From NCBI GenBank assembly GCA_965153285.1, contig OZ229122.1: 64,000 nucleotides of DNA, one strand, 5' to 3'. This DNA is from Podarcis tiliguerta. Its lineage: Eukaryota. A program made the translations under genes and the position numbers. This document shows, in pieces, positions 303 to 64,000 of this stretch (positions are counted from its first letter, which is position 1; every line of letters starts with the position of its first letter). The notes under the pieces are model-generated. The model did no database searches, was not told where the DNA came from, and worked only from the letters and a program-made list of their open reading frames with translations.

Positions 303-651
303 CTGTGGACTGCATGCTCTCTTGAATTGCTTCTACTTCAGCCAGCTCCATGCAGACCCCTTGGCCGTGCATGAGTGTGTGCAGAGGCTTCTCCACTCCC
401 TGCGGCGGGTAGCACCGCAGCCCAGAGCCGCAGCGCGGCGTGTAGACCCCGCAGGGCATTCCTTTGGCCAAGGCGCAAGTGGCGCAGCACCCGCAGCCGG
501 GCTCCTGCACCAGCTCCTCGCACCCGGTGGGCGCCCTGCAGCGCGCCAGCTTCTCCTCGGAGCATGGCGGGCACTGGATGGCGTCGAGGCTCACAGAAAA
601 GCCCACCTGTACCAGGAGCAGCAGAGTGATGGGCGCAGTCCCCGAGTGCAT
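303..651 (-). CDS. IGFBP4: Insulin-like growth factor-binding protein 4, coding exon 1 (signal peptide + IGFBP N-terminal domain); gene continues left of the window
   Basis: ATG at 651 (ctgcctgccATG). Translation [38 protein letters not shown]...[12 protein letters not shown]...[41 protein letters not shown] has the GCGCCxxC IGFBP motif and IGFBP4-type sequence. Phase-1 GT donor at 302-301. Neighbouring TOP2A fits known synteny. Confidence 0.95.
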
Positions 652-14334: not shown

Positions 14335-14482
14335 ATGGGCGCTCTCAGGGCAGCCCCGTCTTTGCGTTGGCTCTGCATCGTCCTGGTGCTAGCAGGGCTG
14401 GCTCCCCTCACTGCTGCTCAGTACTGGTGGTCTTGGGGTCGACAAGAACCCACAACTGTGATGATGCCAACAACCCCCAAAG
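14335..14482 (+). CDS. Multiplexin-like exon 1 (signal peptide)
   Basis: [28 protein letters not shown]|[21 protein letters not shown]; donor G|gtaggt, phase 1. Confidence 0.8.
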
Positions 14483-17400
14483 GTAGGTGCAAAAGGCTTT
14501 CCATTGCTCTTCTATGCGGTGAAGGGGTTGGAAATGTAGGAGGCTCCAGAAAGGTTAATCTCAGATGTTTGGAGCAGAGAGGGCTTGGAGTCACTGCTTG
14601 GTTGTGTTGTAAATAGATCAAGGTGGGGGGGGGGGAAGGACTAGGAGTTTGCAACGGGAGGTATTCGGACTGCAGCTGTTTGGGGTTCGAGCGACCGCCA
14701 TAGTTGTGTGGCAGGCAAGATTTCAACAGGTGCTGCTTTCCCCTGCGTGGAGATGCAGTGAGATGCACAGCTTTTGCTACCAAAAGTTGCACAGCATCTG
14801 TGTACATGGGGTCTGCCTGTTGAACTGCTGCCTTTTCTGCAGCTGTGAGAGCTACAGGAGCCTTGCCCGGGGAAAGTTGGGGAGAGTGCTGTGTGGTGGA
14901 TAGCACTCTAAACTCTGACAGGGGAGGCTTGGGTTCAAATTTCTGCTTAGCCCTGATGCTTCAAGAGCAGTATTGGCCAGGTTGGTCTCTGGCCTGATCT
15001 ACCTCACAAGGTTGTTGTCAGCCCTATCCTGAGCACAGAAGAAGGAAGAATTGCAGAAGGAGGAAGAATGTACGATAAGAAAAGTTAGGAAATATGATTT
15101 GACTGTGATATGGTTCTATGAAATAATGATATTGGGAAATGCTACATATAACTACTAAGAAATTCAGATGGAAGGGATTTGAGGAAGTCAAATAATATGT
15201 TTATGAAGATGGATTTTAATTAATTGTTATTGTAGTGATGATTTGTTTTATTTTATGTTCCATATTCTTTTTTCTTTTTCTTTTTTTCTTTTTCTTTCTT
15301 CTTTTTTAGTATTGTTAATTTTTTTCTTTTATGTTTATGTATGAAAAATAATAAATATTATTGTGGAGGGGGGAAAAGGAGGAAGAATTGGATGTACTTA
15401 CTTTTACTTACTTACTAAATTTGTATGCCACCGTATACCTGTAGGTCTCAGGGCGGTTCACAGTTGGATGCCGCAATAAGAAATAAAACAAACATGGCAT
15501 TCTCCTAACTTTGGCTTTTCTTTCCTGATAGCTCAGTTGGTAGAGCACGATACTCTTAATCTCAGAGCCCTGGGTTCGAGTCCCATGTTGGGTGCATTGC
15601 AGGGGGTTGGACTTAGATGATCTTTGTGATCCCTTCCAGCTCTCATGATTCCGTGATTCCGCTGCTCTGGAAAACGGGTGTCAGAAATGGAGCGGTTTCC
15701 TTTTACATTTAGGATGCTCTGATGTGGTGGTAGTCTCTAACATTGTTTCGTTTTGCCTTCCCAGCCACGGAAGCAGATGTGGAGGAACCCACTGAGAAAA
15801 TGGTCCTGAACACCCCCACCCTTTGGGACACACCAGGGATATTTACAGAGGAGGTGGCAGTCTCCTCTGAAGCAACAACACCAGACCTGGTAAGCAGTTA
15901 CCGTGGGATGGCTGGATGAGGCCAGGGCATTCCTAGCACCCATGTTCGTGGCGAATCATGTAGCAAATATAGTGGAACTCTAGAATTGGAGGGAGCTTTG
16001 TAGGCCATCAAACTGGTACAGCAGGCATGGGGAATCTGTGGAGCTCCAGATGTTGCTGCACTACAACTCCCAACATCCCTGGAGATACTGGATGGGGATC
16101 CTGGGAACTGGAGTCCAACAACAGCCAGGCAATCCACAGGTTCCCTGTCCCAGCACTACAGCACGAGAAACCTCTGGCCCTCCAGATGTTGTCTGGCGCT
16201 AGTTCAGATCAGCCTCAGTCAGTGGCTAAGAATGACAAGTTATACAGTGGTTCTCAACCTGTGGGTCCCCAGATGTTGTTGGACTACAACTCCCGTCATC
16301 CCTGAGCTCTGGCCTTGCTAGCTAGGGGAGTTGTAGTTCAACAACATCTGGGGACCCACAGGTTGAGAAAGGCTGCTTCCGGAGGGTCACAGGCTCCCAA
16401 CACCTGATCTGGTGTAACCCTTTGCTTCATGCAAGTGAGCAGGGTTGGGGTTTTTCCACCTGGGAAGGCTCCTGTGCCTTTAAGAGCAGTGTGGCAAGCA
16501 GAGAGTTGACTATACTTCTATAGCCATCACTATATTTCTATACAGAATAAAGCTTTCGCCTCCTAGATTTCTGGCTTCCTCACAGCTTCCTCATAAAGCA
16601 AGGGTTTGACAGTGTGCCTGTGACAGATGTGTAAAATCATTATGAAGGGAGAGCGCAGCTGCAAAGGCGTGTGTTGGTAACTGGGTGCATATTTGTTTTA
16701 TTTTACTTCTGTTTGTTGCCTTTCTATCCTACCTTTTGTATTCCAAGGAGCTCAAGGTGCCACAAAATATTCTCCCCCTCCCTTCCTCATTTAATCCCCA
16801 CAACAACCCAGTGAGGTAGCTTAGGCTGAGAGGCAGTGACTAGCCCAAGGTCACCCAGTGAGCTTCATGGCTGAGTGGGGATTTTGAACCCTGGCAAGTA
16901 ATAGGAGCAATTTATTATTTATTTTATATTGTAAAATTTATACACCTCTTGATGGTAAAAAAAAAGGGGGGGGGGAGAAACACCTTAAATCGCTTTACAA
17001 AATAACACTTTGCGTTTATGTAGCGTGTTCAAATCACTCATACCTTTTTGCGTGATTTCCGTAATCTTTTGTTTAGTTAGCCACCACCATCATCCCCCCT
17101 GTAATATAGGTTGTTGGAAGAGGACTATGGTTATCAAGTTGTATGCTCTCTGTGCGCGCACACATGGAATCCTGGGAACTGTACTTTGTTAAGGGTGCAG
17201 GCAATGCTTTTTTCTGGGGGTACGCATACCCCTAAACATTTTGTGAATCTTTGAACTTTTGTCCATTTACTGTATTTATTTTTCCCAATTTGAACTATAA
17301 AATTGTGATTTTCTTGAGTCAAAATGAGAGTAAACATTTTTTTAGGGGTGGGGAAGCCCTAGGCAAAGAGAATTGAAGCTCTGTGAGGGGTAAACTACAC

Positions 17401-20400: not shown

Positions 20401-23400
20401 AGAGAAGCTTTTAATGTTTGATGTATCACAGTATTTTAATATTCTTTTGGAAGCCGCCCAGAGTGGCTGGGGAAACCCAGCCAGATGGGCGGGGTATAAA
20501 TAATAAATTATTATTATTATTATTACTGAGAGAGGTTCAAGCTTCTTGTGTTAATTTACAAGGCCCTGAACAACTTAAGCCCAGGGTATTGCAGGGATTG
20601 CCTTAACCCTTATGTTATATCTCAGTAGAGGTTTGGGGTTTGTGTGTGTGATTTCTTTTGTAAAAAAATAAATTGGAATCTTTTTGAAAGTGATACAAAA
20701 CAGTACCAAGAACAAGGCAAAAAAATTAAAAAATACAGAACAATCAAACCAGATGTTCCTGATCCCAGTCACTGAGATCATCTGCAAGAGCATCGTCGGT
20801 CATTCCGTAAGATGGTGAGGCTTGTTTGACAAGATACTGAGCCTTTAGTGTCATCTGTGATGTTTCTACATATTTAGAACGGGGATTTTTGTATGCTGCT
20901 ACATTTGCTATAGAATTACTGTTCTATTATTGCTGCTATTATTAAATTATTCTTGCAGTCTGTTGGTTTGGTGATGCCTTGCCCTGATTGTCACTTTCAG
21001 TATAATTTTGTGTGTATGTGAAAAGGTGGCATACAGATAAATTGATTATGACTTGGAATTTTTTGCTTGCTTTGCGGTTAATATTAGTTAGGCATAAGCC
21101 CAGTTCTAGGGATGTGGGTGGCGCTGTGGGTTAAACCACAGAGCTTAAGACTTGCTGATCAGAAGGTTGGCGGTTCGAATCCCCGTGACGGGGTGAGCTC
21201 CTGTTGCTCGGTCTCTGCTCCTGCCAACCTAGCAGTTCGAAAGCACATCAAAGTGCAAGTAGATAAATAGGTACCACTCTGGCGGGAAGGTAAACGGTGT
21301 TTCTGTGCGCTGCTCTGCTTCGCCAGAAGCGGCTTAGTCATGCTGGCCACATGACCCGGAAGCTGTACGCCGGCTCCCTCCCTGTACGCCAATAAAGCGA
21401 GATGAGCGCCGCAACCCCAGAGTCAGCCACGACTGGACCTAATGGTCAGGGGTCCCTTTACCTTTACCTAAGCCAAGTTCTGGTGTCTCTCTCCTCTCCC
21501 AATCCCATGTTATTAACGCTGTATGAATAGGAAAGTGGGGGGAGCACTCTCACTGCCACCCCTCACTGCCTCTCATTGCCATTGCTGCTCCCCCAGCCCC
21601 TCACATGCCGAGAGGACTGAACCTCTGCCACGGGGAGCCTTTTTTCTACCCCACAGGCTCTCTAGATCTTCCACTGCAGGAGTGGTTAGAGTTCAACAAC
21701 AAACTTTTATTCTCAGCTATAATTGATCTCGCAGATGAAGAATGCTTTCATTTTTATAAATCTTTATTATCTGAACAGTGAATCTTTGTATGAGTGAATG
21801 CTTTGTTATCCAGTTGTAGCTGTGCTGGGTCTTTGTACTTTTGTCCTTCCAGACCGTAAGGCTTTATAGTTTACATTTCTGGTTCTTCTTTTTCCCATCC
21901 TTTTTTGTTATGCTTACCCTTTGTTTGCTAATAAAAAATAAAATTAAAAAACAAAACAATCGGGGTGCTAGGAAACACGGCCCTTATTACCTCTCACATG
22001 ATAATTGTGTGAGGGGGGGGGAAACCTGAAGAGGACTATAAGGATTCAAAATTAATATATATGGTCTTAACCCCTTCATGCATTAATTAGACCAGGGTTT
22101 CCCAAACTTGGGTCTCTGGCTGTTTTCGGACTACAGTTCCCATCATCCCTGACCACTGATCCTGCTAGCTAGAGATGATGGGGGTTGTAGTCCAAAAACA
22201 ACTGGAGATCCAAGTTTGGGAAACATTGAATTAGACTGAAGCATGTTGGTTATATGAGACTGGTTATCCCACAAACTTTATGTCAGGCTGTGGTGTGCCC
22301 ACAAATTCCATTTTTCCCCCTCCCAGGCTACCTCTGCAGCTGACAAGGAGGAAGTGTTTCCTGGCATAGATTTTCCCTTTCAGGACATCCTTGAAGGCAG
22401 CACTGAGGATGAAGATGATGAATTTTTACACAGCCTAGTAACAGCACCGGGGAAGGAGGTGTCAACTGAGCTGGTACACTTCTGTTCTTTTCTGTAGCAA
22501 GTGGGTTGTTGTAATCTAAATATTTTCATCTGCCCCTGAAGGCTGGCTCACGCGGCAGCTGCTACCTACCTAGTTTTAGGGCTTATCCACATCTCTGCTC
22601 TTCCCAGGCATGGTCCACGCTTTAGAAAAGCTCAGTGTTCAAGCGCCTTCTTTTTTCTCTCTTTCTCTTTTGCTCCAGATGTTTCTCCATGGAAACCTGT
22701 TCTTTAAAGTTCAATCGAAACAAATGGCATTCCATGGAAAAACCTCTGTAAATGACTAAGCAGAGGGCCAATAGCAATGCCAGGAGTGAAGAACGCAACA
22801 AATTAAAGAATCAGCTACCATTTTGAAAAAACAGAGAGATGTGTGCGTTGTGTAGCTCCTAGGTCTTCCTACACCATTAGGAGATAGCAGCACTTTGCTT
22901 TGGAGGGTGGGAGGCCTGCTCAGTGGCAGGGAGGAGAAGACTTGGCATCTTAGTTGGTGTCTTACAAAATATGATTTCCTGTCACCATCTTGTTATCTCA
23001 GGAAGATGCAAAACCCTCAATGTCTTCAGTTCACCAAACCACAATCCGGGGAGACTCTGAGACAAAAGAGGTACATTTGGGGTTTTGTTCTGGAAAAAAC
23101 AGTGCCACGTCGAAAGAAAGGAATAGGGGGTGTGGGGAGTTAAAGGGATAGTGACCATAAATAAGTTCAATGGAACTTATTTCTGAGTAAACATACATTA
23201 GTTTATTGCCTTCTGGTGTGGGGGGTTGCTATGGTGAATATATAGCACTAAAGTGCCACGTGGAACCACCATTTTAATTCCCACTTTTTTTTTGCTGAGG
23301 CACTGAAAATCCTCTGTTAGAGAATCCTTGCTTTCCTTCAGAGACCTGCAATTCTCAAGGTTCATTGTGGAGACAGAGTGAAGCCAGTTTTAACCTGCAG

Positions 23401-26400
23401 TATGGCTGCAGGTTAATCAAAGTGGCTGGTCTTGAATAGCAACCATCATCAGAGATGCACTGTTTAGAGAATTCTCAGTTTGTTCATTTTGCCCGGTTAG
23501 AAAACACTTTTCTTTAAATATCCCAGAATGTCTACTAACGGCTCCTTTGCACACCTTTCAGGCACAGCCTGTGACTGAAAAATCATGGTGGCCTCTGGCG
23601 ACTGTTACAAAGGAGCATCCTCAGAAGGCTGAAGTGAGTCAATACAGGGTTTTGGTAGTCCATGGGCTTTGGTAATCCATGCCATATTTTTGTGAGACAT
23701 CATCACCAATACAGTTAATCTCAGCCATTCCTCTGTAGGTATATTGCCCAGGATTTTTTGAAATATTTCAGGACCTCCCTGGGTGGGGATTTAGGAAGAT
23801 ATACTGAAAGACATTGTACTGGTTATTTGGAAGGCCCACCCGCCCACATGACACAGTCATTGACACTGAGACATTGACAGACACAGCTTTGCTCAAAAAC
23901 AATATGGCGTATTTTTCAGGATTCTACGAGTGGTTAATTTATAGAGAGTGAAATGCCAGGCCTTGATTCTCTGACCAAGCTCCATGACTTCTGACTGACA
24001 CTCCCCTCATCAAATCCCAGATTGATATGAATGGTTATCTTGATAGGTCTTATTATATTTTCATTACAAATGTGCACCTTAACAATGTAAACAGGCAGGG
24101 AGGTTATCTGTTTTTTGTCATTGTCTTGTGTCTCAGGAGGACCCACATGTCTCGACTCCTGATGTTCACCAAACCGTGGGCAGGGGAGACTCTGTGGCAA
24201 AAGAGGTATGTAGGGAGTTCACTATCAAGAAGCCAATGCCACTGTGGAAGAAGGGGGAAAGGGGGAAACAACTAAAGGAAAAGCAGAACCGTCATGTTTG
24301 CAATACCAACTTCCTAGAAAGTATATGTGTATGTTTTGCCGGTAAGGTTTACTGGTAGGTTTGGTTCACATTTTAACACAAACTCTACCTAACCTTCACT
24401 TTGCAAAGCAATACACTCAAGATGGCGGGGGTGGCAGCTTTCAGCCTGAGGGCTGCATTCCCTTCTGGGCAAACCTCTGAAGGAGTCATGGCCTCCCCAA
24501 AAATTCCAGGGACTGTAGGAGATCCATATTCCCCTCAGAGAGCTACCAATCCCAAAGTGGTTTAACAATCAGCCCCTCTTCCTAGGGAACTATGGGATTT
24601 CTAGCTCCATGAAGGGAACAAGTCTCCCAACAACTCTCAATGCCCTTAACAAACTACAGTTCCCAGAATTCTCTGAGGGGAAGCCATGACTGTTTAAAGT
24701 GCTATAATACTGCTTTAAACGTATACTGCAGCTGGAGCCTTGTTTTTGTCAGATACTGTCCCTTCCAGATCTGCAGTTGCATGGAAAGTAACAATGCACC
24801 TTGGCAATGTAAAATGGCAGGGAGGTTATTAAATTTCCTAACTGTTGTCATCTTGTATCTCAGGAGGAACCACAACTCTTGACTCCTTCTGTTCACCAGA
24901 CCGTGGTCAGTGGGGACTCTGTGGCAAAAGAGGTATGTAGGCAGTTCATGATCAAGAAGTCAATGTCGCGGTGGAAGAAGGAGCCTAGACAGAATTATGG
25001 CAGCCTGACAGAGAGGCCTGGAATGGCAGCACTATTTCTTTTAAATCAATATTGTGACATTTATATCCCACTTCTCTTCCGCAAAGTTCAAGATGGCATA
25101 TGTGGTTCTCCTACTCATTTTTTTCATCCTCAAAACAATCCTGTGAAGTAGGTCAGGCTGACCCATGTAACTTGGACCAAGGTCACCCAGTAAGATAAAA
25201 TATTGTCTTTCCAGTTCTACAGTTACATGGAAAGAGGGAAAGAAGAAAGTTTTTTTAAAGTCTGGAATAATCAGGTGGAAATGACGCAGAAGGAAGGAAC
25301 TCTGATGGGATGAAATAATAGGGTAGATTTAGAAAGTTGGGGGTGAGTTGTCACACACACAGAGAGAGAGAGGGGGGGGGTCTGCTTTAAAGTCTCTGAT
25401 ATGGCCCTGGAGGGCCTTGAGGTATGTCTATATTAGGGTTGCCATATTTCAAGTAAAAATCTGGACACAAAAAATGGTTAAACTTTTTTAGGGCAATCAC
25501 CTGATAGCATCTCCACCACTGCCAAGCCTAAACCAGAGCCTGGGTTGCCAGAACCTGAAGCAGAACCACCCAAGCATATTTAAACAAAAAAAAATCCAGG
25601 ACATTTGCTTTAAAATGTAAAATTCTCGCCAGATGGGCATGTAGGACCCGCAGAAGAGGACATGTCCAGGAATTCCTGGACGCATGGCAACCCTAGATTC
25701 CTGACCTGGTGAAAAAGGTTTTAAATGTGTAATTTATTTAATTTTTTTTCGGCTTTTTGACAGGTGATTACGAAAGAGGAAACCTCATCCATTTCCCCTC
25801 CCAAGACAGTCGCTGCCTCCATTATTGGGGTAAAAAAGGGGAAAGTTGATGTTTGGGACTACAATTCCCATCATCCCTGACCACTGGTCCTGTTAGCTAG
25901 GGATGATGGGAATTGTAGTCCCAAACATCTGGAGGGCCGGAGTTTGCCTATGCCTGCTCTATGGGTTATGACTTTCCTCTCTGTGTTCCATTGGTGAGAG
26001 GTGATCTACCACTAACTACTTTTTCTGTTTTTCTTAGATGTATAATCTTTCCCAGTGTGTCTGTCCAGCAACACCAGGCCCTCGTGGTGCAAAGGTGCGC
26101 ATCTAAGCTTTCTCCCCCTGTGTTGGGTTGCTGTGGTAATGGCAAGTCCAGGCCAGTCTGCAGCTGAGGGTGTGTCTAGTCTACAAAAGGCATTTTCAAA
26201 CACCGCCTTGAAGAACATGCATAAGGCAAATGAAAACCTATTGGGCATCCCGAGCCATAAAGAAGGCCACATCTATACTACTGTGGTTGCTACCTCCCCC
26301 CCCCCAACCAAATAACCTGTGCCTTTTGAGGGTGGCACAATAACCAGGCATCCAAAAGCTGCAACTGTCCCCCATCTCTGTATCTCCTTGCTGAGAAGCA

Positions 26401-27264
26401 TTCGTGCTGTTGAGCTGTACTGATCTATTGTTTTGGAGCTGTTAGTCCAGCCTTCACTAAGGGGCATCCTGGCGCTGGGACTGATGAGAGTTGTAGTCCA
26501 AAACATATGGAAGGTAGCACCTGGTTGGCCGAATGCTGTGTTGCTATGGGGACTCTAGCTGCTAGACAGCAGCCCAAATAAATCTCAGGTGGGAAGGATG
26601 CTATTGCACTTAGGTCCTGCTTGTGGGCTCCTCCTAGGCACCTGCCTGGCCACTGTGAGAACATGATGCTAGACTAGATGGGCCATTGACCTGGTCCAGC
26701 AGGTCTCTCCTTATGCTCTTTGCCTACAGTGAGCTGAGAAATATTTCACTCTGTATGGAAGAATCATAGAATCGTAGAGTTGGAAGGCACCCTGAAGGTC
26801 ATCTAGTCCAAGCCCCAGCAATGCAGGAATCTCAGCTAAAGCATCCATGACAGATGGCCATCCAACCTCTGCTTAAATACCTCCAAGAGTACTATGGAAT
26901 CCAGTTAAGATGACTTTAAAGCCCTAAACAGCCTCGGTCCAGTATACCTGAAGGAGCGTCTCCACCCCCATCATTCTGCCTGGACACTGAGGTCCAGTGC
27001 CAAGGGCCTCCTGGCAGTTCCCTTGCTGCGAGACGCCAAGTTACAGGGAACCAGGCAGAGGGCCTTCTCGGTAGTGGCACCCACCCTGTGGAACGCCCTC
27101 CCACCAGATGTCAGGGGGGGGGAACTACCAGACTTTTAGAAGACATCTGAAGGCAGCCCTGTTCAGGGAAGCTCTTAATGTTTAATAGGTTTTTGTATTT
27201 TAATATTCTGTTGGAAGCCGCCCAGAGTGGCTGGGGAAACCCAGCCAGATGAGCAGGATATAAA

Positions 27265-27303
<39 letters not shown>

Positions 27304-33300: not shown

Positions 33301-36300
33301 GCAACCAAACCTAGAGGACAAAGCAGCAGTTAGCCTCATCACACCCTGAACAGAATCAGCAGCACAAGTTTGTACACTGGGCAGGGGAAGCTGCTGTGAA
33401 GAAAGGCCTGTTTTGAACCTAGAGACTCTAAATACGGGGTGATTTAGAGTCCTCACGAACCATCAGCTTCAGGCAGTGCTGCCCACAGTGTCCTTTGAGT
33501 TGGCGAGCCACCCTGCCTTCTTCCCGAAATTGGGTGTGGTGGGGAAAGAACCATCCCCAGGAGTGTCGTTCTCTAACTTAAGAGCTCCTGATCCTATCAT
33601 AAGCTTATGAATAGGCTTGTCGCTGTGTCCCTGGCTGTACCTATAAGTGTGTCATGGTGATTTGACCTCCCATTTGGTTTCTTTTCTTCCCCCTTGCAGG
33701 GTGAAAAAGGAGAACCTGGAGAACGGGTACGTAGTTGTGCAAAGAGGACCCACATCTTCAAAGCACTGTGATGCATTCTTCTTCTTCTTCTTCTTCTTCT
33801 TCTTCTTCTTCTTCTTCTTCTTCTTCTTCTTCTTCTTCTTCTTCTCATTCAAAGGCCCTTCATTGTGTTTTCTTACCCAGGATTGCTGCAACTGCCCTGG
33901 AGCAACAAAAGCTGACTCTGACTCCTGGACACCTTTTACCTACCAAGAGGTACACTGAAATATGTTTGCCAACACCCTGCCATTTAGGATTGGTGGTCTT
34001 AACACTGAGTGCATGGGGCAGTGTTTCCTCCAAGGATCAGTTAAGGGGAAACTTGTGCTTGGTATCTGCTACAAGCCTTTGTCTGTGGAGGAACAAAAAG
34101 CAAAGGCGGAAGTCAGTGGAGGGCAAAAGGTATTTTAGTGGGCTTCCAGTGCTAGTCTGGATTGTCATGGGCCAGGGGTCAGCAAACTTTTTCAGCAGGG
34201 GGCTGGTCCACTGTCCCTCAGACCTTGTGAGGGGGCAAGACTATATTGGGGGGGGGGCACAAATAACCCAGAGATGCATTTTAAATAAAAGCACACATTC
34301 TACTCACGTAAAAACACCAGGCAGGCCCCACAAATAACCCAGAGATGCATTTTAAATAAAAGGACACATTCCTCTCATGTAAAAACATGCTGATTCCCGG
34401 ACTGTCCAGGCCGGATTTAGAAGGTGATTAGGCTGCACATCTGGCCCCCAGGCCTTAGTTTGCCTACCCATGTCATGGGCCATATTGGAGGAGGTGTTTC
34501 CCCAGGATCTCCTCTTAGGGTGCATACAGGTTGTAGAAAAAACACCCCAAAACTCAACCAACAATTCTGTCCCACTGCTTCTCCTCATACCCAAGAGTTC
34601 CATCATATTGATACATGCATGTTCCAAAGCAATGCCAATTTTAATATTTAGGCATGGCTTAGTAAAAAAAAAAAATGTTGCCACCGTTCCTGGCCTATTT
34701 ATTTATTTACTTACTATTTCACATCACAAGATTTATATGCCGGTTGACTGTAACAAAGCCTCAAAGTAGTTTATAGAAAGAGCCAAAAATGCAGTGTCAA
34801 TAGACTCTCCCAGCTTGTACTAATGGTGGTTGTGTTCCAAAGTGTGACCTGCCATGGGTGTAAACATCCTGAATTTCTGCAGTCAATGGGGAAAGAGGCA
34901 GGGGTGTGTGTGGCTTATGTATTAAGTAAAAATGACATGGGTGGGCAAGATGTGCCCGTGAGCAATATCAGGATATTGAGTTGGCGTCTTTTTCTTCTCC
35001 TCCTCCTCCAGAATGGCAAAGGAGACCTTGAGATATATGGCTCGATTGCCAGCCGTGTAAGCCAGCCATTTCATCTTCTCCAACAAACCTTGGTTTGGTT
35101 TTGGTTGTGTTTTTTTTTTTAAATTGTATCTTGCCTTCAGAATGTGCTGTCTTCCCAATCTTGGCCTTTTCCCTTAAAAAAAAAACCAGAACAGATAAAA
35201 AGAAGCAATTTTGCCTAAACTGGGAGTAGGGAACCTTTTTCAGTCTGAGGGCTGGCTTTCCTCGTGGCAGCCTTATGGGGTCCATGTGGTAGGTGTGGCC
35301 AGAGGCAAAAGTGGGTGGAGCAATGGATGCGACTCCTACCTTTGAACAGGTGGATACATTCCAGCCATGCAAAAGTCACAAGTTTCAGCACACATGCATA
35401 CAAACCATCCCTCCATCCAAGCTAGCAGGCAGGGCTAGCCCAGGACGCTAGAGACAAAACACAAATTGCTGCCTCTGTCCCCTCTGCTACATGCTTGCAT
35501 GCTGCTGTGCACCCACCATGCACCTGCCTGGCATGTGACCGCTGTCACATGCATGAATGGGCATGCAGCTGCGAGTGTATGGGGGGGGGAGAGAGAAGAT
35601 CATGAGCGGTGTGCTCCTTAGAGGTTGGATCTGCTGCCCCTCCCAGCTGTCCAGAGCTTGCTGCCTTGAGGCTACTGCTTCATCCTGCCTCATGGGTAGG
35701 CTGGTCCTGCTAGCAGGAGGCGTAATCACAGTTCAAGGCACAGTCCAGCCAGGCAAAAGCACTCGAGAAGGGCTTGGTGATGGAGTACAGGCAGAGAGCC
35801 CCAGAGGGCTCTGCATTTGACCTCTTGACCCCCAGTTTCCACCCACCACCCCAGACTAAATGAGCATTGTATGGAACCAAAGATCCCAGGCTGACTTCCT
35901 TAGAGTATTGGAGTCCCCCTGAGTCTTGCACGAGAAACAGTTGTGCAAGCAGGCAAGCTATTCGCCAGCCCATTCAGACGTCAAGGTGTGAAATGTAATG
36001 GTGTTTGCAAAGTTCGGTTTCAGAATGCAGGTAACACCCAGTGTCTCTGTTCCCTTCTCTGCTTCTTCTAGGGTCCTCCAGGCCCCGCAGGAAATCCCGG
36101 CATGCCTGGGCCCCCAGGCCCTCCTGGACCACCAGGAGTTATTTACCTTAATGTAAGTGATCCTCATCCACTACCCCCCACCAAAAAAACCCACCTCAAT
36201 GTTAGGGGAGATGGAGCAGCCACATGGTATTTAGAAGAGTGACTTGTGGAAAGTTAGGGATCTGTCTCTTCAGCTGTTTTTTAAACATCACATACATGGG

Positions 36301-38322
36301 ATGGGGTTTTTCTTGCTTTGTGGGATTTTGTATCTAATACTGAAAGCTATCCCCCTTTCCGCTTTAACCTGTGTTTTTTCCTTCCCCTGCCTCCCATCTG
36401 TCTCTTTCCAGAGGGTGATCCCTATCCCACCCAGGAGGCATTGCAAGCAACCGGTGAGTTGGCAGGGCCAAATGGCTGCTTTTTCGCTGCTCTCTAATAC
36501 GTCTTGCAAAGACAAGTAGCTCCAGGTTCCACCAAAAGCATCGTTCAGCAATCCAAGCCTCTGTTGCATGAGAGGACAGCCAAAGGAATATTTCCTGTGT
36601 AGAATGAACAGAAATGTTTGGTTCTGGTGTAGCAGCAGCCTTGGCTAAAATATTAGTAGTATTAGTAGTAGTGGTATTTATTACATACCGTATTTTTTGC
36701 TCTATAAGACTCACTTTTTCCCTCCTAAAAAGTAAGAGGAAATATGTGTGCGTCTTATGGACCAAATGCAGGCTGCGCAGCTATCCCAGAAGCCAGAACA
36801 GCAAGAGGGATTGCTGCTTTCACTGCGCAGCGATCCCTTTTGCTATTCTGGCTTCTGAGATTCAGAATTTTTTTCTTCTTGTTTTCCTCCTCCTAAAACT
36901 AGGTGCGTCTTGTGGTCTGGTGCGTCTTATAGAGCGAAAAATATGGCAATTGGCAAATACATTTCATTAATTAATTGCTCTTTACAAAATAAAAAAGGTA
37001 TCAAAGCAGCTTGCAATAATTTAAAATACAAAGTACCATAAGATGAACCACAACCAAAATTTACAGAAATGGTTGGGTACAACAGACAGTGCTGGTCTGC
37101 AGACAAAATTAATGCTGCTGACCCCTGAACTTGGTAGACGCTCCCCACACATAAGACGCAGCCCTGTGGGTTAAGGGTGCCTTGCTCAGCAAGAAGGCCG
37201 ATTTAAAAATCTTTTGATTCAATTTTTCACTGAGTCCCACCCCAAACTGGGCAAAGTGTTTTCTGCACACTCCATTCGCCTCTATAACTTGGCTCATGTG
37301 GTGCTCATCTCTGTGCTCTTTGTTTTCTTCCAGTTGAGCCAGGACCCATCTTTGGATTCAGGTGCGAGCCGTTTTCTTTCTGGCTAATAATGTGCGACTT
37401 CTCTTGCGTATCTGCTCTGCTGCGATTTGATGTGGCTTGCATCTCTATCCAGCATATGGCCAACCGGCAGCCACTTTGTGGGGGGGCGTGCGAGGATATA
37501 GTCTGCAGAGGGTTTTTCTCTGACTCTGCAATCTGTGGTTCCACCGGTTCTTTGCTGAATTCAGCCTGTGGATGACACAATATTAGCCCAGGACTTGCAT
37601 GTACACTTCTAGTAGACATTTAGCTCTAGCCAGTCCCTTCTTCACCACCTTTACAAGGGAAGAGAAACTTGTGGAAATGTATGCAATGTGCCCTGTTTGG
37701 GTGTTTTCTGAGAGTCTTCCTTGCCACCACTGGCAGCATACTGGTCTTGGAATTTGAGCTGTGAGTGTGTTGCCAAGTCAGTAAGGAAGAATTGTTGTCT
37801 GCCAGCCATTCTAATTTAGAACCATTAATATGCAGCACTTCAGGATGTTGTTTACAGACTCTCCTCTTTGGGGGTGGGGAGCTTTTTCTTGTACAGTTGA
37901 TGGAATATTTGCTTCCTGGGATGGATGGTGGCTGGTTAGTTCATTCTGTCCTTTTTTCTGCTGTGCAGATGATGGGCTGTCTTTGAAGGATTCTTCCAAT
38001 GAAAACCAGTATGGGTTTAAGGTAGGTCACCTTCATTCTTCTCCTTTCTGATACTCCCTCCAATAGTTAGTCCAGGGTAAAGAGCTGAACAAGTACAGGT
38101 AGAGGGAACCAGGCAAATGGCCTTCTCAGTGGTGGCACCTACCCTGTGGAACGCCCTCCCATCAGGTGTCAAGGAAATAAACAACTACTTGACTTTTAGA
38201 ATACATCTGAAGGCAGCCCTGTTTAGGGAAGTTTTTAATGTTTGATGTTTTATTCTGGTTTTTTTTCTGTTGGGAGCCACCTGGAATGGCTGGGGAAACC
38301 CAGCCAGATGGGTGGGGTATAA

Positions 38323-38361
<39 letters not shown>

Positions 38362-41300
38362 TTCCTCCACCACCAGCTCCTCTACACATGAGATTTAGAA
38401 ATTCACTTCAAATAATCTGGATTTCTTCACACCCTCAAGGAAATCTCCTTCAGCTATCTCATTTCTCAGCTATCAGAGAAATGTTTTTCTCTGTCCTGAG
38501 ACAACATGCTTCTTATCTGAAAGTCAGGGGTTGCAGGTGCTCAAACAATATACAGCTACTAAGTGTTAGGTTAGTAGCCACTAGATTCTACAATAATAAT
38601 CTAAGGATCACTGAAGCGGCTCGGGAGTTCCCCTTTTGTTAAGGTGAGTAGCAAAAACCAAACAAATACATTTTGCTAGTATAAACCTAAAACTTCTGTA
38701 ACTCATCAAAATGACAATAGTTGAACTAAAAATGTAAAGCATGGCATAAATCACCCACCTGATGAAGTCTAGCCCTGTGCCAAATTTCAAAATGATCCAC
38801 TGAAAATCGCCAATGATACAGTAAGTTAAAAAGTGCTGAAAATTGACACATTGACCCCTTTTACTCCAATTTTTATACAATCTTGTCATATATTTGTTTC
38901 CAATTTGGGTGGGAAGCTATGGAGTAATTCAAGCTCCTTGAAGACATGTTTTCATTGGTTTCATGACGTTCTGAGGAGCACTTCAAACATTATTATGGTT
39001 TTATTGCCCCATTAAGGCCTATAATAGCCACTATTGGCAAAATAATATGATGTGTGTGGCGTATAAATACTGAAGCAATATTCATGGACCGTTCTTCAGT
39101 GTTTGCAGAGGGAGCCACCTAGCGAATAGGATGTGTAATGCCTGTTGTTTCAGTTGTGGGACCGACCAGGAGACACCAGCTGTTGGGCTGTGATCACATT
39201 TGGAAGCCTGATAAGTTACTGTGGGCACCGCACAGATCCCCCAAGAACATGATGTGCACATTCTCACAACCACACACATCCTAAAACACACACACATTGC
39301 TACCCCACACATCCCAGCACATACACAGAAACACACACACCAAAGACACTCCACCCAGGCATAAACAGTTTACTCACTGAAGGATTCCTGTAGCAATATG
39401 GCAAGGCTCAGGTGTTTCATAAGACATTACAGGGCCAAAACAATGTGGAGCATCTTTGCAGGTCCAGGCACTTCACTGAGGCCTGAGAGACCAAAGTAAA
39501 ATGTAGGGGCACGGATGGCAAATTTTAAGCAAGCCCAGCTTGTGATGTGGCACAACTGTTGTCGCAGCATGTTTCTCAAAGCATCGGCCTTAGCTTCCTG
39601 TTTCCTGGCTTTGTGGAGCTTGAGAGGCAGCATGAGATAGCCTTACCTCTGGTCATCCTTAACCAAAAGGTCTCTTGATCGCTGAATTGCAAAGCCTTCC
39701 ACCAGTTGAGGGTAAGTGTGCTTTTAATAAAGGCACCTGCTCTTCCTTTACTTTCCAGCACTCCACGTGGATCTTCAAGTCAAAAGAGCTGATGTTCAAA
39801 TCGGCCTCCTCCATTCCTGAAGGCAGCTTGGTCTACGTCAGTGAAGGGAATGAAGCTTTCTTCCGAACCCCCAAGGGATGGAGCAGGCTTCTGGTAGGAA
39901 AACATTGGGACACTGATGTGCATGACTCTGTAGATGTGCAGGACTCAGACTCACTCAGTATCTGATACACAAGCATCTGGTTGGCCACTATATGAAACAG
40001 GAGAAGGGACAGCCACTTACCAGGGATGATGTTGTAGTGGGTTTATTGCATCAGCAGGAGGTAGGACTGCTCTGGACTGTTTAGACCCTTTGCCCTGATC
40101 CAAGAGGGCTGCTCAGCTGCTCTCTTTATTTTTAAAAATCAGGATGAGATTAAGTTATGCTTGCTTGAGCTACCTGGGCAATGCTTGCCCTGATGGCATT
40201 TTTAAAAAAACTTTTCGCACATGAGAACAAATGCTCGTTTTTTTACACATTTCGGTCCAGCCTTATCCCTGTTATGTTTCTATTGTCTCTTGATCAGCTG
40301 GAGGATTCAGAGTCTTTACTGGTTGGAGATGACCCTTCGGTGTCTACAGACAGAAATCAGGTGTGGACTTCTTCCAACTTGTAATGCTTTGCCACTGCCT
40401 GTTCAGCAGGTCTCCTGGGTTTTGCTGTGGTATAAGTTAAAGGGCTGAAAGTGGGGAGAGCAAAGAAACCGAAAGCCCATAAAATATTATACCCATTTGG
40501 GTGGCGCACTTGCAGAAGAGCATAGTTAACTGTTGGATAAAGTAATGATGAAATTAAGTGATATAAACCCCTTTGAGTAACAAATTTCATCTATTTGTAA
40601 AGCACCTCGTCTACACACCAACAACTCCTTACTCCAGCCTCAGCAGGCCTATTTAATTCTTCTCAACAACTGCCCCACCACAGCTACGGACAGGCAGAAA
40701 ACTCTTACTGGGAACAGGCTGCATGTGCTGCTAGCACCTTCATCACCTTCCTAGTTCTCTTGCACTCCGTGCATAGCTAGTAGAAGGGGCAAATGGTGTC
40801 TGGGTGGCAATATTTGCTGCAGTTTATGTGTGCATGCATTCTAAGGGCTCGTTGACACAGTATTTGAGTTTCAGCTGAGTCACATTAAAAATTGTTTTGT
40901 TTCACCGTGTATCCTGTCTTCCTAGGTCCAAAACGACAAGAGCCAAGCAACCATCCAGACTGTACCACCTAGCATCCCCCAGAGGATCCCTTCAGTAAGT
41001 TCAACAGGAGAGGAGTGTAAGGCAGTCAAGCTGCTGGCACAACAGCTTGCCTTTTCTTCTTCTTTTTGAGTGTTGTCTCAGGCAAAGAATTTAGCAGCAG
41101 TGGGTGGGGAGGGACACAGGTGGCGCTGTGGTCTAAACCACTGAGCCTCTTGGGCTTGCTGATCAGAAGGTCAATTGTTCAAATCCCCACTATGGGGTGA
41201 GCTTCCGTTGCTCTGTCCCAGCTCCTGCCAACCTAGGAGTTTGAAGGCATACCAGTGCAAGTACAGTGGGACCTTGGTTCTCAAACTTAATCTGTTCCAG

Positions 41301-43531
41301 AAGTCCGTTTGACTCCCGAAACCATTCGAAAACCAAGGCACGGCTTCTCATTGGCTGCAGGAGCTTCCTGCACTCAATTAGAAGCCGCGTCGGATGTTCG
41401 GCTTCCAAAAAACGTTCGCAAACCAGAACACTCACTTCCAGGTTTGCGGCATTCAGGAGCTGATTTGTTTGGGGGCCAAGCTGTTCAACAACAAGGTACC
41501 ACTGTAGATGTATAGGTACTGCTGCGGCAGGAAGGTAAACAGCATTTCCGTGCACTCTGGTTTCCTAGTTTCCTTCATGGTGTTCTGTTGCGCCAGAAGC
41601 GGTTTAGTCATGCTAGCCACATGACACGGAAAGCTGTCAGTGGACCAACGCCTACTTCCTCGGCCTGAAAAGTGAGATGAGCGCCACAACCCCATAGTTG
41701 CCTTTGACTGGACTTAACCATCCAGGGGTCCTTTACCTTTACCATTTTTTATAGACCTTGCTGTACCAATCTCTTCTTTCTGGTGGCCCCCTTGAAGATA
41801 TGGTGCAAAACCTGGCAAGGCCATAACAAGAACCTGACTGGTTGATTGACACCACTCCTCTGGTTGATCTACTCCACCCTGTTGTCCTCCTTAGGTGTCA
41901 GGTGTTTAACTAAAATCCCTCAATTTTTCTAGCTCCGCCTAGTGGCCCTCAACATCCCCCTGACTGGTAGCATGAATGGGATTGGTGGCGTTGACCTGCG
42001 GTGCTATCGGCAGTCACAGGAGGCGAAGCTGCGTGGAACTTTCCGGGCCTTCCTGTCATCATCCACTCAAAGCCTAGTCTCCATCGTGAAGAGAGCTGAC
42101 AGGAACCTGCCTATTGTCAACCTTAAGGCTAGTAGCAACATCCTGTTGAATTCTTGATTTGATGCAGACATCTTTTCTGAGGAGAGCACTGGTACCTGAT
42201 GAAAAAGGCATGTGGTGCTTGCCTAGCAACTGCCCAACTAATTCTCATGATAAGTGATGACCCTAGCAGGCACTCCTATGTTTTTGGGAAGGGAAGGATT
42301 CTTGTGCCTTCCGCTGCTGTGGCTGAGGCACTTGGGTTGTAGAATAATGTTGTGGGGCCTACAGCCTCTGCTGACTGTTTTCTAGCTTGAAAAGCATTGT
42401 TTCTGTTGCAGGGCCAGCTGCTGGCAAAGAGTTGGAATTCCCTCTTCAGTAGTGCTGCTCGTTTCAATTCCCCAAAGTCGCCCATCTACACATTCAATGG
42501 GCGCAATGTCATGACGGATCCTATGTGGTGAGTAACATGTGGGGAGAGAAAGCATCTGTAGGGATATGTGACCATATGGGAGGTACAAGCAGGGCATCCC
42601 AAACTATATATAACTATATTCACCAGTTCCCCCATAAGTGCGACTGTACCTAATTGGGGAATATCTAGGTGGGGAAAATATTCAGGAGGCCCAGAAGGGG
42701 CAAATTAATGGGTAATGAGGTCCAGCATATTAGATTTCTGGGGAAGGTTTTTGAAGCACACAGGTGAGGAGTTCAGAACCTACATCTTGCCTATTGCATA
42801 CCTCCCCTGCTCCACAGCTTGTCTCTCCATGTGCTTTTCTTCTCCACTTACCACGAGTAATGGAAGGAACCATGACCATGGACTCAGCTATACAGCTGCA
42901 AATAAAATGTTTTAAGTGTGCTGTAAAGCACAATACACAAATCTGACACTAGATGGTGACCATGAGCTATGGCACATTCAATATATTTTTCAAAACTTTT
43001 TTTTAAATAAGCATTTTCACAGCATTTTTTTAAATATGTGTGTAGATTCCACCTATCTATGAAAAACACCTGGGCAGAGGAGCTGCTGGGAGGTGTAAAT
43101 GGAATCTGCAGGAAACACTGGGCTGGGCTTCCCTTTTGCTGTTAAATTCAGACCCAACCTCTTTCTATGCTATTGGGATGATAGTTCCACATTTAAACAC
43201 ATGCATCCACAGCCATTGTGTCTAGTTTGGCCCTTGGTAATAATGGATTGAGACAAGACAGGATGGGTGCTTTTTTGTGCCATGCAGTTGACTTCAGCTA
43301 TCCACTTTTGTATGTCCTTCTATTTCTATGTTCAGGAGACAAAAGGCAGTCTGGCATGGTGTCAAACAACTGGGAGGCCAGGCCGAAAATCAAGACTGTC
43401 AGGAGTGGCGAACAGCCTCCAGCCAGTCCAAAGGCCTTGCCTCACCTCCAGCCGGAGGCAAGTTCCTCACAGCGGACACACATAGCTGCTCAGACTTCCT
43501 GATTGTTCTGTGCGTGGAAAATGCCTTCTGA
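14335..43531 (+). CDS. Multiplexin-type collagen (collagen XV/XVIII-like, endostatin-bearing); whole gene model of 26 coding exons, about 869 aa
   Basis: Phase-consistent chain of exons (listed below) totalling 2610 nt with no internal stop: signal peptide, mucin-like stalk, Gly-X-Y segments, trimerization domain, endostatin domain. Confidence 0.85.
15525..15660 (+). mobile_element. tRNA-Lys-derived SINE with CR1-like tail
   Basis: tagctcagttggtagagcacgatactcttaatctcag..ggttcgagtccc followed by gggggttggacttagatgat..cccttccag. Confidence 0.6.
15765..15889 (+). CDS. Multiplexin-like exon 2 (Thr/Glu/Pro-rich)
   Basis: Acceptor ttttgccttcccag; [42 protein letters not shown]; donor gtaagc; phases 1 to 0. 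Confidence 0.75.
18998..19318 (-). mobile_element. Sauria SINE
   Basis: Reverse-complement copy; TSD tgcgcacctataa/tgcgcacctgtaa. Confidence 0.85.
20310..20526 (+). mobile_element. LINE (L2-like) 3' end with (TAT)n tail
   Basis: ttttagaagacatctgaaggcagccctg...gccgcccagagtggctggggaaacccagccagatggg..ttattatt. Same family at about 6145-6255, 8940-9100 (-), 26915-27303 and 38105-38361. Confidence 0.65.
21109..21466 (+). mobile_element. Sauria SINE
   Basis: Full-length copy; TSD taagcccagttct/taagccaagttct. Confidence 0.85.
22093..22228. mobile_element. hAT-type MITE
   Basis: TIR cagggtttcccaaac...gtttgggaaacattg; perfect 8-bp TSD aattagac. Confidence 0.85.
22327..22473 (+). CDS. Multiplexin-like exon 3 (acidic)
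   Basis: Acceptor tttttccccctcccag; [49 protein letters not shown]; donor gtacac; 147 nt, phase 0-0. Confidence 0.7.
23002..23070 (+). CDS. Multiplexin-like exon 4 (69-nt repeat copy 1, IRGDS)
   Basis: ttatctcag|[23 protein letters not shown]|gtacat. Confidence 0.65.
23562..23633 (+). CDS. Multiplexin-like exon 5
   Basis: Perfect branch point TACTAAC at 23533-39; ctttcag|[24 protein letters not shown]|gtgagt. Confidence 0.7.
24137..24205 (+). CDS. Multiplexin-like exon 6 (69-nt repeat copy 2, GRGDS)
   Basis: gtctcag|[23 protein letters not shown]|gtatgt. Confidence 0.7.
24864..24932 (+). CDS. Multiplexin-like exon 7 (69-nt repeat copy 3, VSGDS)
   Basis: atctcag|[23 protein letters not shown]|gtatgt. 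Confidence 0.7.
25434..25695. mobile_element. hAT-like non-autonomous element (TAGGGTTGCCA ends)
   Basis: tagggttgccat...atggcaacccta inverted ends. Confidence 0.65.
25764..25829 (+). CDS. Multiplexin-like exon 8
   Basis: ctttttgacag|[22 protein letters not shown]|gtaaaa; 66 nt. Confidence 0.65.
26038..26094 (+). CDS. Multiplexin-like exon 9 (CxC motif, start of COL1)
   Basis: ttttcttag|[19 protein letters not shown]|gtgcgc. Confidence 0.8.
27613..27777 (+). CDS. Multiplexin-like exon 10 (Gly-X-Y)
   Basis: [55 protein letters not shown]|gtgaga. Confidence 0.9.
28849..29199 (+). CDS. Multiplexin-like exon 11 (37 uninterrupted Gly-X-Y triplets)
   Basis: ttccctag|[15 protein letters not shown]...GKDGPK|gtaagc; 351 nt. 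Confidence 0.93.
29536..29776. mobile_element. Tigger-like MITE
   Basis: CAGTGGTACCTC...GAGGTACCACTG|TA. Confidence 0.75.
29840..29950 (+). CDS. Multiplexin-like exon 12 (Gly-X-Y)
   Basis: ttgcag|[37 protein letters not shown]|gtgagt. Confidence 0.92.
31698..31739 (+). CDS. Multiplexin-like exon 13
   Basis: ctttgtag|[14 protein letters not shown]|gtgagt. Confidence 0.85.
31920..32052 (-). mobile_element. Sauria SINE 5' fragment
   Basis: Reverse complement of the tRNA-like head (ggggattcgaacc; ccacagcgccacc). Confidence 0.7.
33700..33726 (+). CDS. Multiplexin-like exon 14 (27-nt microexon)
   Basis: cccttgcag|GEKGEPGER|gtacgt. Confidence 0.8.
33776..33845. repeat. (TTC)n microsatellite, about 23 units
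   Basis: Direct reading; lies inside the 154-nt intron 14. Confidence 0.95.
33881..33949 (+). CDS. Multiplexin-like exon 15 (CCxC interruption)
   Basis: tcttacccag|[23 protein letters not shown]|gtacac. Confidence 0.75.
34173..34472. mobile_element. hAT-type non-autonomous transposon
   Basis: caggggtcagcaaac...gtttgcctacccatg with perfect 8-bp TSD tcatgggc; internal repeat of cacaaataacccagagatgcattttaaataaaag. Confidence 0.8.
35012..35056 (+). CDS. Multiplexin-like exon 16
   Basis: Strong polypyrimidine tract; ccag|[15 protein letters not shown]|gtaagc. Confidence 0.75.
36072..36152 (+). CDS. Multiplexin-like exon 17 (last Gly-X-Y segment)
   Basis: ttctag|[27 protein letters not shown]|gtaagt. 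Confidence 0.9.
36412..36453 (+). CDS. Multiplexin-like exon 18 (PIPxRxHCK motif)
   Basis: tttccag|[14 protein letters not shown]|gtgagt; resembles collagen XV ..FPIPVRPHCKMP (recalled sequence). Confidence 0.85.
36688..36946. mobile_element. Tc1/mariner-pogo MITE (CCGTATTTT ends)
   Basis: TA|ccgtattttttgctctataagac...gtcttatagagcgaaaaatatgg; internal hairpin. Confidence 0.7.
37334..37361 (+). CDS. Multiplexin-like exon 19 (28 nt)
   Basis: ttcttccag|LSQDPSLDS+G|gtgcga; its phase 1 matches the next exon. Confidence 0.55.
37969..38021 (+). CDS. Multiplexin-like exon 20
   Basis: ctgtgcag|(D)[17 protein letters not shown]|gtaggt; 28+53 = 81 nt restores phase 0. Confidence 0.6.
39759..39893 (+). 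CDS. Multiplexin-like exon 21 (collagen XV/XVIII trimerization domain)
   Basis: [45 protein letters not shown] matches the PEGxLxYV...xxRxxxGWxxL pattern. Confidence 0.92.
40298..40360 (+). CDS. Multiplexin-like exon 22 (hinge)
   Basis: gatcag|[21 protein letters not shown]|gtgtgg. Confidence 0.7.
40926..40994 (+). CDS. Multiplexin-like exon 23 (hinge)
   Basis: ttcctag|[23 protein letters not shown]|gtaagt. Confidence 0.78.
41111..41743 (+). mobile_element. Sauria SINE interrupted by a MITE
   Basis: SINE head 41111-41263, SINE resumes at 41505 and runs to its cctttaccttt tail. Confidence 0.8.
41264..41504. mobile_element. Tigger-like MITE nested in a Sauria SINE
   Basis: TA|CAGTGGGACCTTGG...CAAGGTACCACTG|TA at the SINE site gcaagTAgat. 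Confidence 0.85.
41933..42127 (+). CDS. Multiplexin-like exon 24 (endostatin domain, part 1)
   Basis: [65 protein letters not shown]; predicted GC donor AAG|gctagt. Confidence 0.93.
42412..42527 (+). CDS. Multiplexin-like exon 25 (endostatin domain, part 2)
   Basis: [38 protein letters not shown](W)|gtgagt; 116 nt. Confidence 0.93.
43336..43531 (+). CDS. Multiplexin-like exon 26 (endostatin C-terminus and stop)
   Basis: RQKAVWHG...QDCQEWRT...GLAS...[16 protein letters not shown]. Confidence 0.93.
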
Positions 43532-43968
43532 GAAGAGCGCAGCTTCAGATCAGCAAGGAACAGCAGAAGGAGCCAGTTGCTTCAAAGGCTGGATCAGGAT
43601 GACCCTTAAGACACATGAGGTGGAAAATGCAGGTACTCACGCTTCCACCCCAGCTGGGAAAGAATGTTTGAGAGGAAAGAAAAACCTTGCATCGCCTGCA
43701 CCTCAGCAAGCTGCCATGTGTGCTGATATGTAGAATCAGCAGCTCACGCAGGCAGGTGCAAAAGGGGCTTCTGCTTTGTTACAATGTGTGTACCTGGACT
43801 TACATGTGCACCACCAGCACTCATGTACAGTATGCTCATATACACACTGCTGAGAGGTTTAGGAACTTTTGCTGGAGTTATGACGTGTGCTTGTTATGGA
43901 TGTGTGTTAACCCTTATGCCCACAAGAAGCTCTCACATGAAGAAACAAAGAAAGCTTGGTTTATTATA

Positions 43969-63841: not shown

Positions 63842-64000
63842 GTTAGCAACTCACTGTCCAACTTCTGCCTTCTTGGCTTTGGCTGGGTTGTTTTGAAAGA
63901 TATAATGTGGTTTTAACATGTTCCTAAATCTAATCACTATGATAATCTTGATGTAGCATGCCCTACAGCAGGAGGTTTAGCAAGATGGTCCTCTATCCTT

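Follow-up and report, generated by a model that had tools for sequence, protein, structure and literature searches.

A probable third multiplexin gene of jawed vertebrates, flanked by IGFBP4 and a type II topoisomerase gene in the lizard Podarcis tiliguerta

Collagens XV and XVIII are regarded as the sole vertebrate multiplexins, and endostatin biology is known almost wholly from mouse and human. A 64,000-nucleotide (nt) stretch of the genome of the lizard Podarcis tiliguerta (contig OZ229122.1 of assembly GCA_965153285.1; the whole stretch is called the window below) raises the question of whether that pair is complete. Between IGFBP4 and a gene for a type II DNA topoisomerase (TOP2), the window holds a multi-exon collagen gene that runs on the + strand from an ATG at 14335 to 43531, with the stop codon at 43529-43531. 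A first-pass annotation of the same DNA had proposed that this gene is a paralog separate from COL15A1 and COL18A1. The analysis reported here leads to a similar view: in all likelihood the locus is an intact third multiplexin gene of jawed vertebrates, paralogous to the two known ones. It adds a hitherto undescribed collagen to the multiplexins and does not amount to a new kind of molecule. The literature searched contained no account of a third vertebrate multiplexin, and it also held nothing useful in the way of bird gene lists with a COL15A1-named gene near IGFBP4 and TOP2A. A 2020 review of collagen XV lists as vertebrate multiplexins XV, XVIII and the zebrafish a/b copies only (PMC7852327).

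The domains of the predicted protein are those of a multiplexin. The first-pass annotation had read a signal peptide, a stalk, Gly-X-Y segments, a trimerization domain and an endostatin domain with four Cys, and this order is borne out by Pfam scans, run on single stop-free stretches of the window, by a scan for Gly-X-Y triplets and by alignment. After a signal-peptide-like start come 232 residues that are 29% Ser/Thr/Pro and 17% Asp/Glu and include two RGD motifs; a CxC motif lies six residues ahead of the first collagenous run. The 77 Gly-X-Y triplets fall into four runs (8-37 each) on the + strand between 27.6 and 36.1 kb, with a Pfam Collagen match at 28.9-29.2 kb and no comparable runs elsewhere in the window. 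The Cys-bearing interruptions between the runs contain a single Cys and a CC.C motif. Behind the last run stand, in order, a linker of the form RV.P.PPR.HCK, the trimerization domain, a hinge and the endostatin domain. Collagen_trimer (PF20010) is matched upstream of endostatin, at ~39.8 kb, with 34.4 bits against a cut-off of 23.8 (E = 2.3e-8); structure prediction for three copies of this exon gave a score of 0.02, which counts neither way on trimerization. The endostatin domain (PF06482) is complete in three exon pieces, and each of its four Cys has an aligned counterpart in collagens XV and XVIII.

A TSPN domain was sought by tblastn of the true COL15A1 and COL18A1 N-termini against the 64-kb window, and no match fell below E = 0.4. 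The role of N-terminal His residues in zinc binding by collagen XVIII endostatin is established. At this position of the alignment the COL18A1 rows read H.H......LHL and the window reads PQRIPSLRL, without the zinc histidines of the COL18A1 type.

The gene is intact. A homology-guided model comprises 25 exons, 2502 nt and 833 residues with no internal stop; its acceptors are all AG, and of its donors 23 are GT and one, at 42128, is GC. Exons were placed by tblastn with orthologous proteins, followed by a simple search over splice sites and phases. Three short exons were missed by the first tblastn chaining and placed afterwards: the 27-nt exon 13 came from a three-frame reading, and the 28-nt exon 18 and 42-nt exon 12 from targeted scans. 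The spliced model was used locally only, for the frame check, alignments and trees, and the database searches were made with single exons or database proteins. The first-pass annotation had counted 26 exons and 869 residues. Its coordinates stand, but its extra exon (36 residues) was not recovered in 14335-43531 by homology-guided modelling. The GC donor follows the first endostatin exon (AAG/gctagt, 42127/42128), and the sole in-frame GT alternative there breaks the alignment with every orthologue.

Relatives of the protein were found under many database names. With the first endostatin exon as query, HMMER against 1.84 billion representative proteins gave, among the best 150 matches listed, a top group at 68-78% identity followed by a drop to ~65% or less. 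This group and its kin are proteins of 750-870 residues from geckos, iguanians, anguimorphs, an amphisbaenian, snakes, turtles and birds. Frog and caecilian members extend from partial models of 450 residues up to 1145, those of shark, skate, ray and chimaera have 930-1400, and those of bichir, coelacanth and platypus are short entries. The names given to them, 'collagen alpha-1(XV) chain-like', '(XVIII) chain-like', '(I)', '(II)', '(VIII)' or '(X)-like' and 'uncharacterized LOC', agree with the earlier expectation that the gene would be present in databases only under automatic or uncharacterised names. None of the proteins returned matches that of the window exactly. The closest among them, from Rhineura, is 74% identical over its full length and 80% identical in the C-terminal region, where identity to gecko is 64%.

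These proteins share traits that set them apart from the known multiplexins. The CxC motif ahead of the first collagenous run occurs from shark to lizard and is absent at that position in all COL15A1 and COL18A1 compared; the RV.P.PPR.HCK linker has the same span and is likewise absent from COL15A1 and COL18A1. Full-length members have 57-98 triplets, as against 117-185 in most full-length COL15A1 and COL18A1 compared, and their C-terminal non-collagenous region is ~300 residues long. Pfam finds in them Collagen, Collagen_trimer and Endostatin only: seven members from shark to bird, including shark and skate proteins of 1230-1300 residues, gave no match to Laminin_G_3/TSPN, whereas weak matches to Laminin_G_3 were obtained with true COL15A1 from shark and from frog.

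It is conceivable that the lineage is real and the copy in this genome silent or pseudogenizing, its frame kept open by chance. The clade evolves fast, as the C-terminal identities to gecko and Rhineura illustrate; the donors at exon 3 are weak; and the non-gecko squamates compared, the window among them, lack the last six residues present in geckos, turtles, birds and coelacanth. Against such decay, the gene has canonical splice sites and an open frame in 25 of 25 exons along its 29 kb, no conserved Cys is missing, the Gly-X-Y register is unbroken, and full-length orthologues persist across squamates. In assembled contigs, furthermore, encoded pieces of orthologues continue without a break through the positions that correspond to exon junctions 21/22, 22/23 and 23/24. 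The simplest reading of these contigs is that they are spliced transcripts of the orthologues, which they probably are. We consider a silent copy unlikely. Intactness across many lineages, together with the conservation of all structural Cys, is sequence evidence for a functional gene, to which the contigs add weaker support.

Whether the gene is a paralog in its own right was judged from the sequence after the last collagenous run. The alignment joined the window model to 88 proteins (89 rows x 264 columns) drawn from the new group, COL15A1, COL18A1, teleost col15a1a/b and col18a1a, one lamprey sequence and invertebrate outgroups. In the maximum-likelihood (ML) tree (IQ-TREE, LG+C20+F+G4; support given as bootstrap/Shimodaira-Hasegawa-like approximate likelihood ratio test, SH-aLRT) the window lies in a new clade supported at 100/98. 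This clade divides into a chondrichthyan branch (99/90; nine proteins including chimaera) and an osteichthyan branch (100/99) of coelacanth, bichirs, frogs, platypus, turtles, birds and squamates, the window among the last. The window stands outside both the COL18A1 clade (100/99), with shark, skate, ray-finned fishes, amphibians, tuatara and mammals, and the COL15A1 clade (88/92), with cartilaginous fishes, frogs, mammals and the teleost a/b copies. A phylogeny of this C-terminal region had been called for by the first-pass annotation, whose claim of a separate paralog it sustains. The lamprey sequence groups weakly with the new clade (86/62). In approximately unbiased (AU) tests, constraining the new clade's tetrapod members and tetrapod COL15A1 to a single clade made the log-likelihood 97.8 units worse (p = 5.5e-11), and forcing the platypus protein into COL15A1 made it 60.8 units worse (p = 4.2e-5). 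Single species also carry two paralogs: the new type occurs with a COL15A1 type in Heterodontus, Rhinoraja and Narcine, and with COL18A1 in Leucoraja and Rhinatrema.

These results bear directly on the alternative that the gene is the lizard orthologue of COL15A1 or COL18A1, relocated, shortened and diverged. In its favour, the Anolis orthologue goes under the NCBI name 'collagen alpha-1(XV) chain' with no '-like', frog COL15A1 as a query brought up no COL15A1 from sauropsids, and a first quick tree placed the new clade with the COL15A1 groups (SH-aLRT 94). The frog-query search also returned few mammalian COL15A1, however, so the sauropsid blank weighs little. Grouping with tetrapod COL15A1 is rejected by the AU test, the COL18A1 clade forms without the window, and frogs and cartilaginous fishes carry both genes. 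COL18A1 is present in tuatara. In human, COL15A1 and TGFBR1 are neighbours. A songbird study reports COL15A1 and TGFBR1 as shared candidate genes, with COL15A1 single-nucleotide polymorphisms on chromosome 2 (PMC10630373), which sets a songbird COL15A1 beside TGFBR1. The AU tests, the co-occurring paralogs, the songbird COL15A1 and the tuatara COL18A1 thus indicate that the gene is neither a moved COL15A1 nor a moved COL18A1, and relocation can be given almost no credence. A variant was also considered, in which sauropsids have no true COL15A1 and the new gene is misnamed COL15A1; the songbird COL15A1 with TGFBR1 disfavours it (PMC10630373).

How old is this separate lineage? A recent multiplexin duplicate limited to sauropsids or tetrapods would be in keeping with the retrieval, in which the majority of full-length members are sauropsid and those from bichir, coelacanth and platypus are short or long-branched entries. 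Yet the nine chondrichthyan proteins, chimaera included, form the sister branch in a union supported at 100/98; in their CxC motif, R.HCK linker and small number of triplets they agree with the other members, and chondrichthyan species have separate COL15A1-type genes as well. Such a recent origin is very improbable. Since chondrichthyans, bichirs and coelacanth all belong to the clade, and several cartilaginous fishes have a second paralog, the split predates crown jawed vertebrates; on the sequences compared, the third lineage is older than that crown. Its timing and the three-clade pattern would fit an origin by whole-genome duplication.

The first-pass annotation had supposed a gene kept in reptiles and lost in mammals. 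It is indeed present in reptiles, and no therian copy was found among the retrieved proteins, but it extends far beyond reptiles and reaches the platypus: the holders are sharks, rays, chimaera, bichirs, coelacanth, frogs, caecilian, turtles, birds, squamates and platypus. The platypus protein (P0336, 464 residues, 'collagen alpha-1(XV) chain-like') falls in the new clade with a branch length of 0.84. Its place there means that the gene survived into monotremes, where the copy is perhaps under relaxed constraint. All 20 of the 20 teleost rows of the col15a1a/b and 'XVIII-like' kinds group with COL15A1, and the col18a1a rows fall in the COL18A1 clade. Among the former, P0278, P0284, P0295, P0297 and others are named 'collagen alpha-1(XVIII) chain-like' (~1250 residues) and group with col15a1a; as they lie inside the COL15A1 clade, their automatic names mislead.

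With moderate confidence, we favour a joint reading in which jawed vertebrates ancestrally had three multiplexins. The third, without TSPN, with a CxC knot and about half the length, would have come from the early vertebrate genome duplications and would lie in the Hox-linked IGFBP/TOP2/RAR region; it would have been kept in cartilaginous fishes, bichirs, coelacanth, amphibians, sauropsids and monotremes and lost independently in therians and teleosts. The region of IGFBP4 and TOP2A is presumably part of a Hox-linked paralogy group. Several points weigh against the view of the gene as a separate third multiplexin. The branching order of the three jawed-vertebrate clades is not settled by the ML tree. 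The groups used in the AU tests were named after the first quick tree had been seen, but the first of these tests matches the outcome that the first-pass annotation had itself put forward as refuting its claim, a protein nested within COL15A1 or COL18A1. The protein searches were of low recall, with small numbers of COL15A1 from mammals and of COL18A1 from amniotes. The retrieved proteins included no member from therians or teleosts, and at such recall this means 'not found' only.

Within squamates the gene has varied in structure. Exons 4-6 are three tandem 69-nt exons of phase 0-0 that encode RGDS, RGDS and SGDS. In other squamates two exons of the 69-nt type flank the exon that encodes VITKEETSS; in the window all three precede it, and the local exon order has therefore been rearranged. 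RGD in the N-terminal region is also found in several squamates and in frogs but is missing from geckos, turtles and sharks. At the C-terminal end, encoded in the window at 43520-43531, the proteins of the window, Rhineura and Anolis finish with ...VEN(A/T)F, and those of gecko, turtle, bird, frog, platypus, bichir and coelacanth have five or six further C-terminal residues, mostly ..Y.HMW. The comparison points to a C-terminal shortening that arose within squamates.

By analogy with collagens XV and XVIII, the product would be a secreted chain of ~833 residues. Three such chains may assemble through the trimerization domain into a homotrimer with a short, flexible, interrupted triple helix, in which the CxC and CC.C motifs could form interchain disulfides. 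The four Cys of the endostatin domain would form two disulfide pairs. The molecule would be expected in or near basement membranes, and its hinge could be cleaved to free an endostatin-like fragment. It is possible, too, that the RGD exons bind integrin.

If the proposed third multiplexin is real, it is a collagen type outside the mammalian catalogue of 28 types, and many vertebrates own a second or third endostatin-type domain that has no counterpart in human or mouse. Should chick, Xenopus, lizards and sharks express it, the COL15A1 and COL18A1 data from knock-outs and expression studies in non-mammalian models would need rereading because of possible redundancy and mis-assigned orthology, of which the Anolis gene named 'collagen XV' by NCBI is an instance. 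In addition, the gene would provide a natural example of loss, from which one could ask which basement-membrane function therians dropped or covered otherwise.

The exons and the neighbouring genes are listed in Table 1; the window contains no undetermined bases (0 N). Upstream, IGFBP4 is identified by a stop-free segment (79-906, - strand) that scores 180 bits against the PDB structure of the IGFBP4 N-domain and 99 bits against IGFBP5. Downstream, exon translations match TOP2, and the position between IGFBP4 and a TOP2 gene given by the first-pass annotation is correct. Its naming of the neighbour as TOP2A is sound as far as a type II topoisomerase goes: the exon at 53193-53489 scores a near-equal 114.9 bits against PDB TOP2A and 113 bits against TOP2B, which does not in itself separate alpha from beta, and the gene is called TOP2A because IGFBP4 adjoins. 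The human IGFBP4-TOP2A interval is not known to hold a collagen gene. Three other features were noted, the first two judged by eye. Just past the collagen stop, two stop-free stretches with a PPYSP..P.DF.LF motif resemble a mariner/Tc1-type transposase (43917-44582, - strand). Between IGFBP4 and the collagen gene, long open stretches with a reverse-transcriptase-like YADDT (10155-11620, - strand) look like the remnant of a long interspersed nuclear element. The short intron between exons 13 and 14 holds a long CTT/T-rich microsatellite (~33760-33840), whose three frames read poly-Ser, poly-Leu and poly-Phe.

Table 1. Exons of the collagen gene and neighbouring genes in the window, with the basis for each placement (a slash in a splice site marks the exon boundary).
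Feature	Position	Strand	Basis
Exon 1, start codon and signal-peptide-like hydrophobic stretch	14335-14482	+	43-47% identity to Sceloporus/Elgaria/Anolis N-termini; GT donor, phase 1
Exon 2, acidic Ser/Thr/Pro-rich N-terminal region	15765-15889	+	tblastn, Rhineura 59% identity; AG acceptor, GT donor, phases agree
Exon 3, acidic (EDEDDEF)	22327-22437	+	Weak donors, alternatives 22458/22473; 22437 picked by orthologue alignment
Exon 4, 69-nt repeat exon copy 1, RGDS	23002-23070	+	Direct-repeat family D1; phase 0-0
Exon 5, 69-nt repeat exon copy 2, RGDS	24137-24205	+	86% identity with copy 3 across 131 nt, intron flanks included
Exon 6, 69-nt repeat exon copy 3, SGDS	24864-24932	+	Direct repeat, homology
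Exon 7, Ser/Thr-rich (VITKEETSS...)	25764-25829	+	59-73% identity to squamate orthologues
Exon 8, CxC motif (CVC) and onset of first collagenous run	26038-26094	+	Homology
Exon 9, collagenous, 13 triplets (run 27613-27729)	27613-27777	+	Gly-X-Y scan, homology
Exon 10, collagenous, 37 triplets, 351 nt (run 28867-29199)	28849-29199	+	Pfam Collagen E = 1.4e-20; orthologues 71-76% identical
Exon 11, collagenous, 12 triplets (run 29840-29947)	29840-29950	+	Gly-X-Y scan, splice/phase search
Exon 12, 42-nt, 14-residue interruption with Cys	31698-31739	+	Orthologue-peptide scan; tag/TGC acceptor, AAG/gtgagt donor, phase 0-0
Exon 13, 27-nt, collagenous (GEKGEPGER)	33700-33726	+	Three-frame reading, phase search
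Exon 14, non-collagenous interruption with CC.C	33881-33949	+	70% identity to Rhineura
Exon 15, short 15-residue linker	35012-35056	+	tblastn, phase search
Exon 16, final collagenous run, 8 triplets (run 36072-36143)	36072-36152	+	Gly-X-Y scan, homology
Exon 17, clade-specific linker RV.P.PPR.HCK, conserved Cys	36412-36453	+	Homology, alignment
Exon 18, 28-nt micro-exon (LSQDPSLDS)	37334-37361	+	Required for phase; best splice-plus-homology candidate
Exon 19, linker ahead of trimerization domain	37969-38021	+	Homology
Exon 20, multiplexin trimerization domain	39759-39893	+	Pfam Collagen_trimer E = 2.3e-8; weak PDB matches 3n3f (XV), 3hon (XVIII)
Exon 21, hinge	40298-40360	+	Homology
Exon 22, hinge	40926-40994	+	Homology
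Exon 23, endostatin part 1, first Cys, GC donor	41933-42127	+	Pfam Endostatin profile 1-70 of 170, E = 6e-23
Exon 24, endostatin part 2	42412-42527	+	Pfam Endostatin profile 65-105 of 170, E = 6e-8
Exon 25, endostatin part 3, three Cys, stop codon	43336-43531	+	Pfam Endostatin profile 106-169 of 170, E = 2e-15
IGFBP4 exon 1 (upstream neighbour, directed away from the collagen gene)	~330-650	-	PDB match
Type II DNA topoisomerase gene (downstream, orientation as collagen gene; continues beyond window end)	50478-64000	+	Exon translations match TOP2

Of the two known vertebrate multiplexins, collagen XV resembles the new protein in its interrupted triple helix, in the family of its trimerization domain (best PDB match 3n3f) and in its four-Cys endostatin-type C-terminus; the N-terminal zinc-binding His are absent in both. 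The first quick tree put the new clade nearer COL15A1 than COL18A1, but the careful tree leaves this grouping undecided. Unlike collagen XV, the new protein belongs to a separate clade, lacks a TSPN domain, has about 77 triplets, and carries the CxC and R.HCK motifs. Its C-terminal non-collagenous region measures ~300 residues against ~255 in XV, with a C-terminal identity of 40-43%. The loci differ as well, the new gene lying between IGFBP4 and TOP2 and COL15A1 beside TGFBR1 (bird: PMC10630373).

With collagen XVIII the new protein has in common the multiplexin architecture and the hinge between the trimerization domain and endostatin. Among solved endostatins, its first endostatin exon matches those of collagen XVIII best (PDB XVIII 69 bits, XV 44 bits). 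It nevertheless falls in a separate clade, is much shorter, and has neither TSPN nor the DUF959 and frizzled N-terminal variants of collagen XVIII; the H-x-H...H zinc site is missing, and C-terminal identity is 36-37%. Long isoforms of invertebrate multiplexins have TSPN and some invertebrate isoforms are without it, and for that reason TSPN is treated here as a variant feature of multiplexins. The invertebrate multiplexins, namely Drosophila Mp, C. elegans CLE-1 and those of amphioxus and Ciona, are outgroups in the tree. They are like the new protein in having the same C-terminal domain pair and fewer collagenous segments than mammalian XV and XVIII (PMC7852327).

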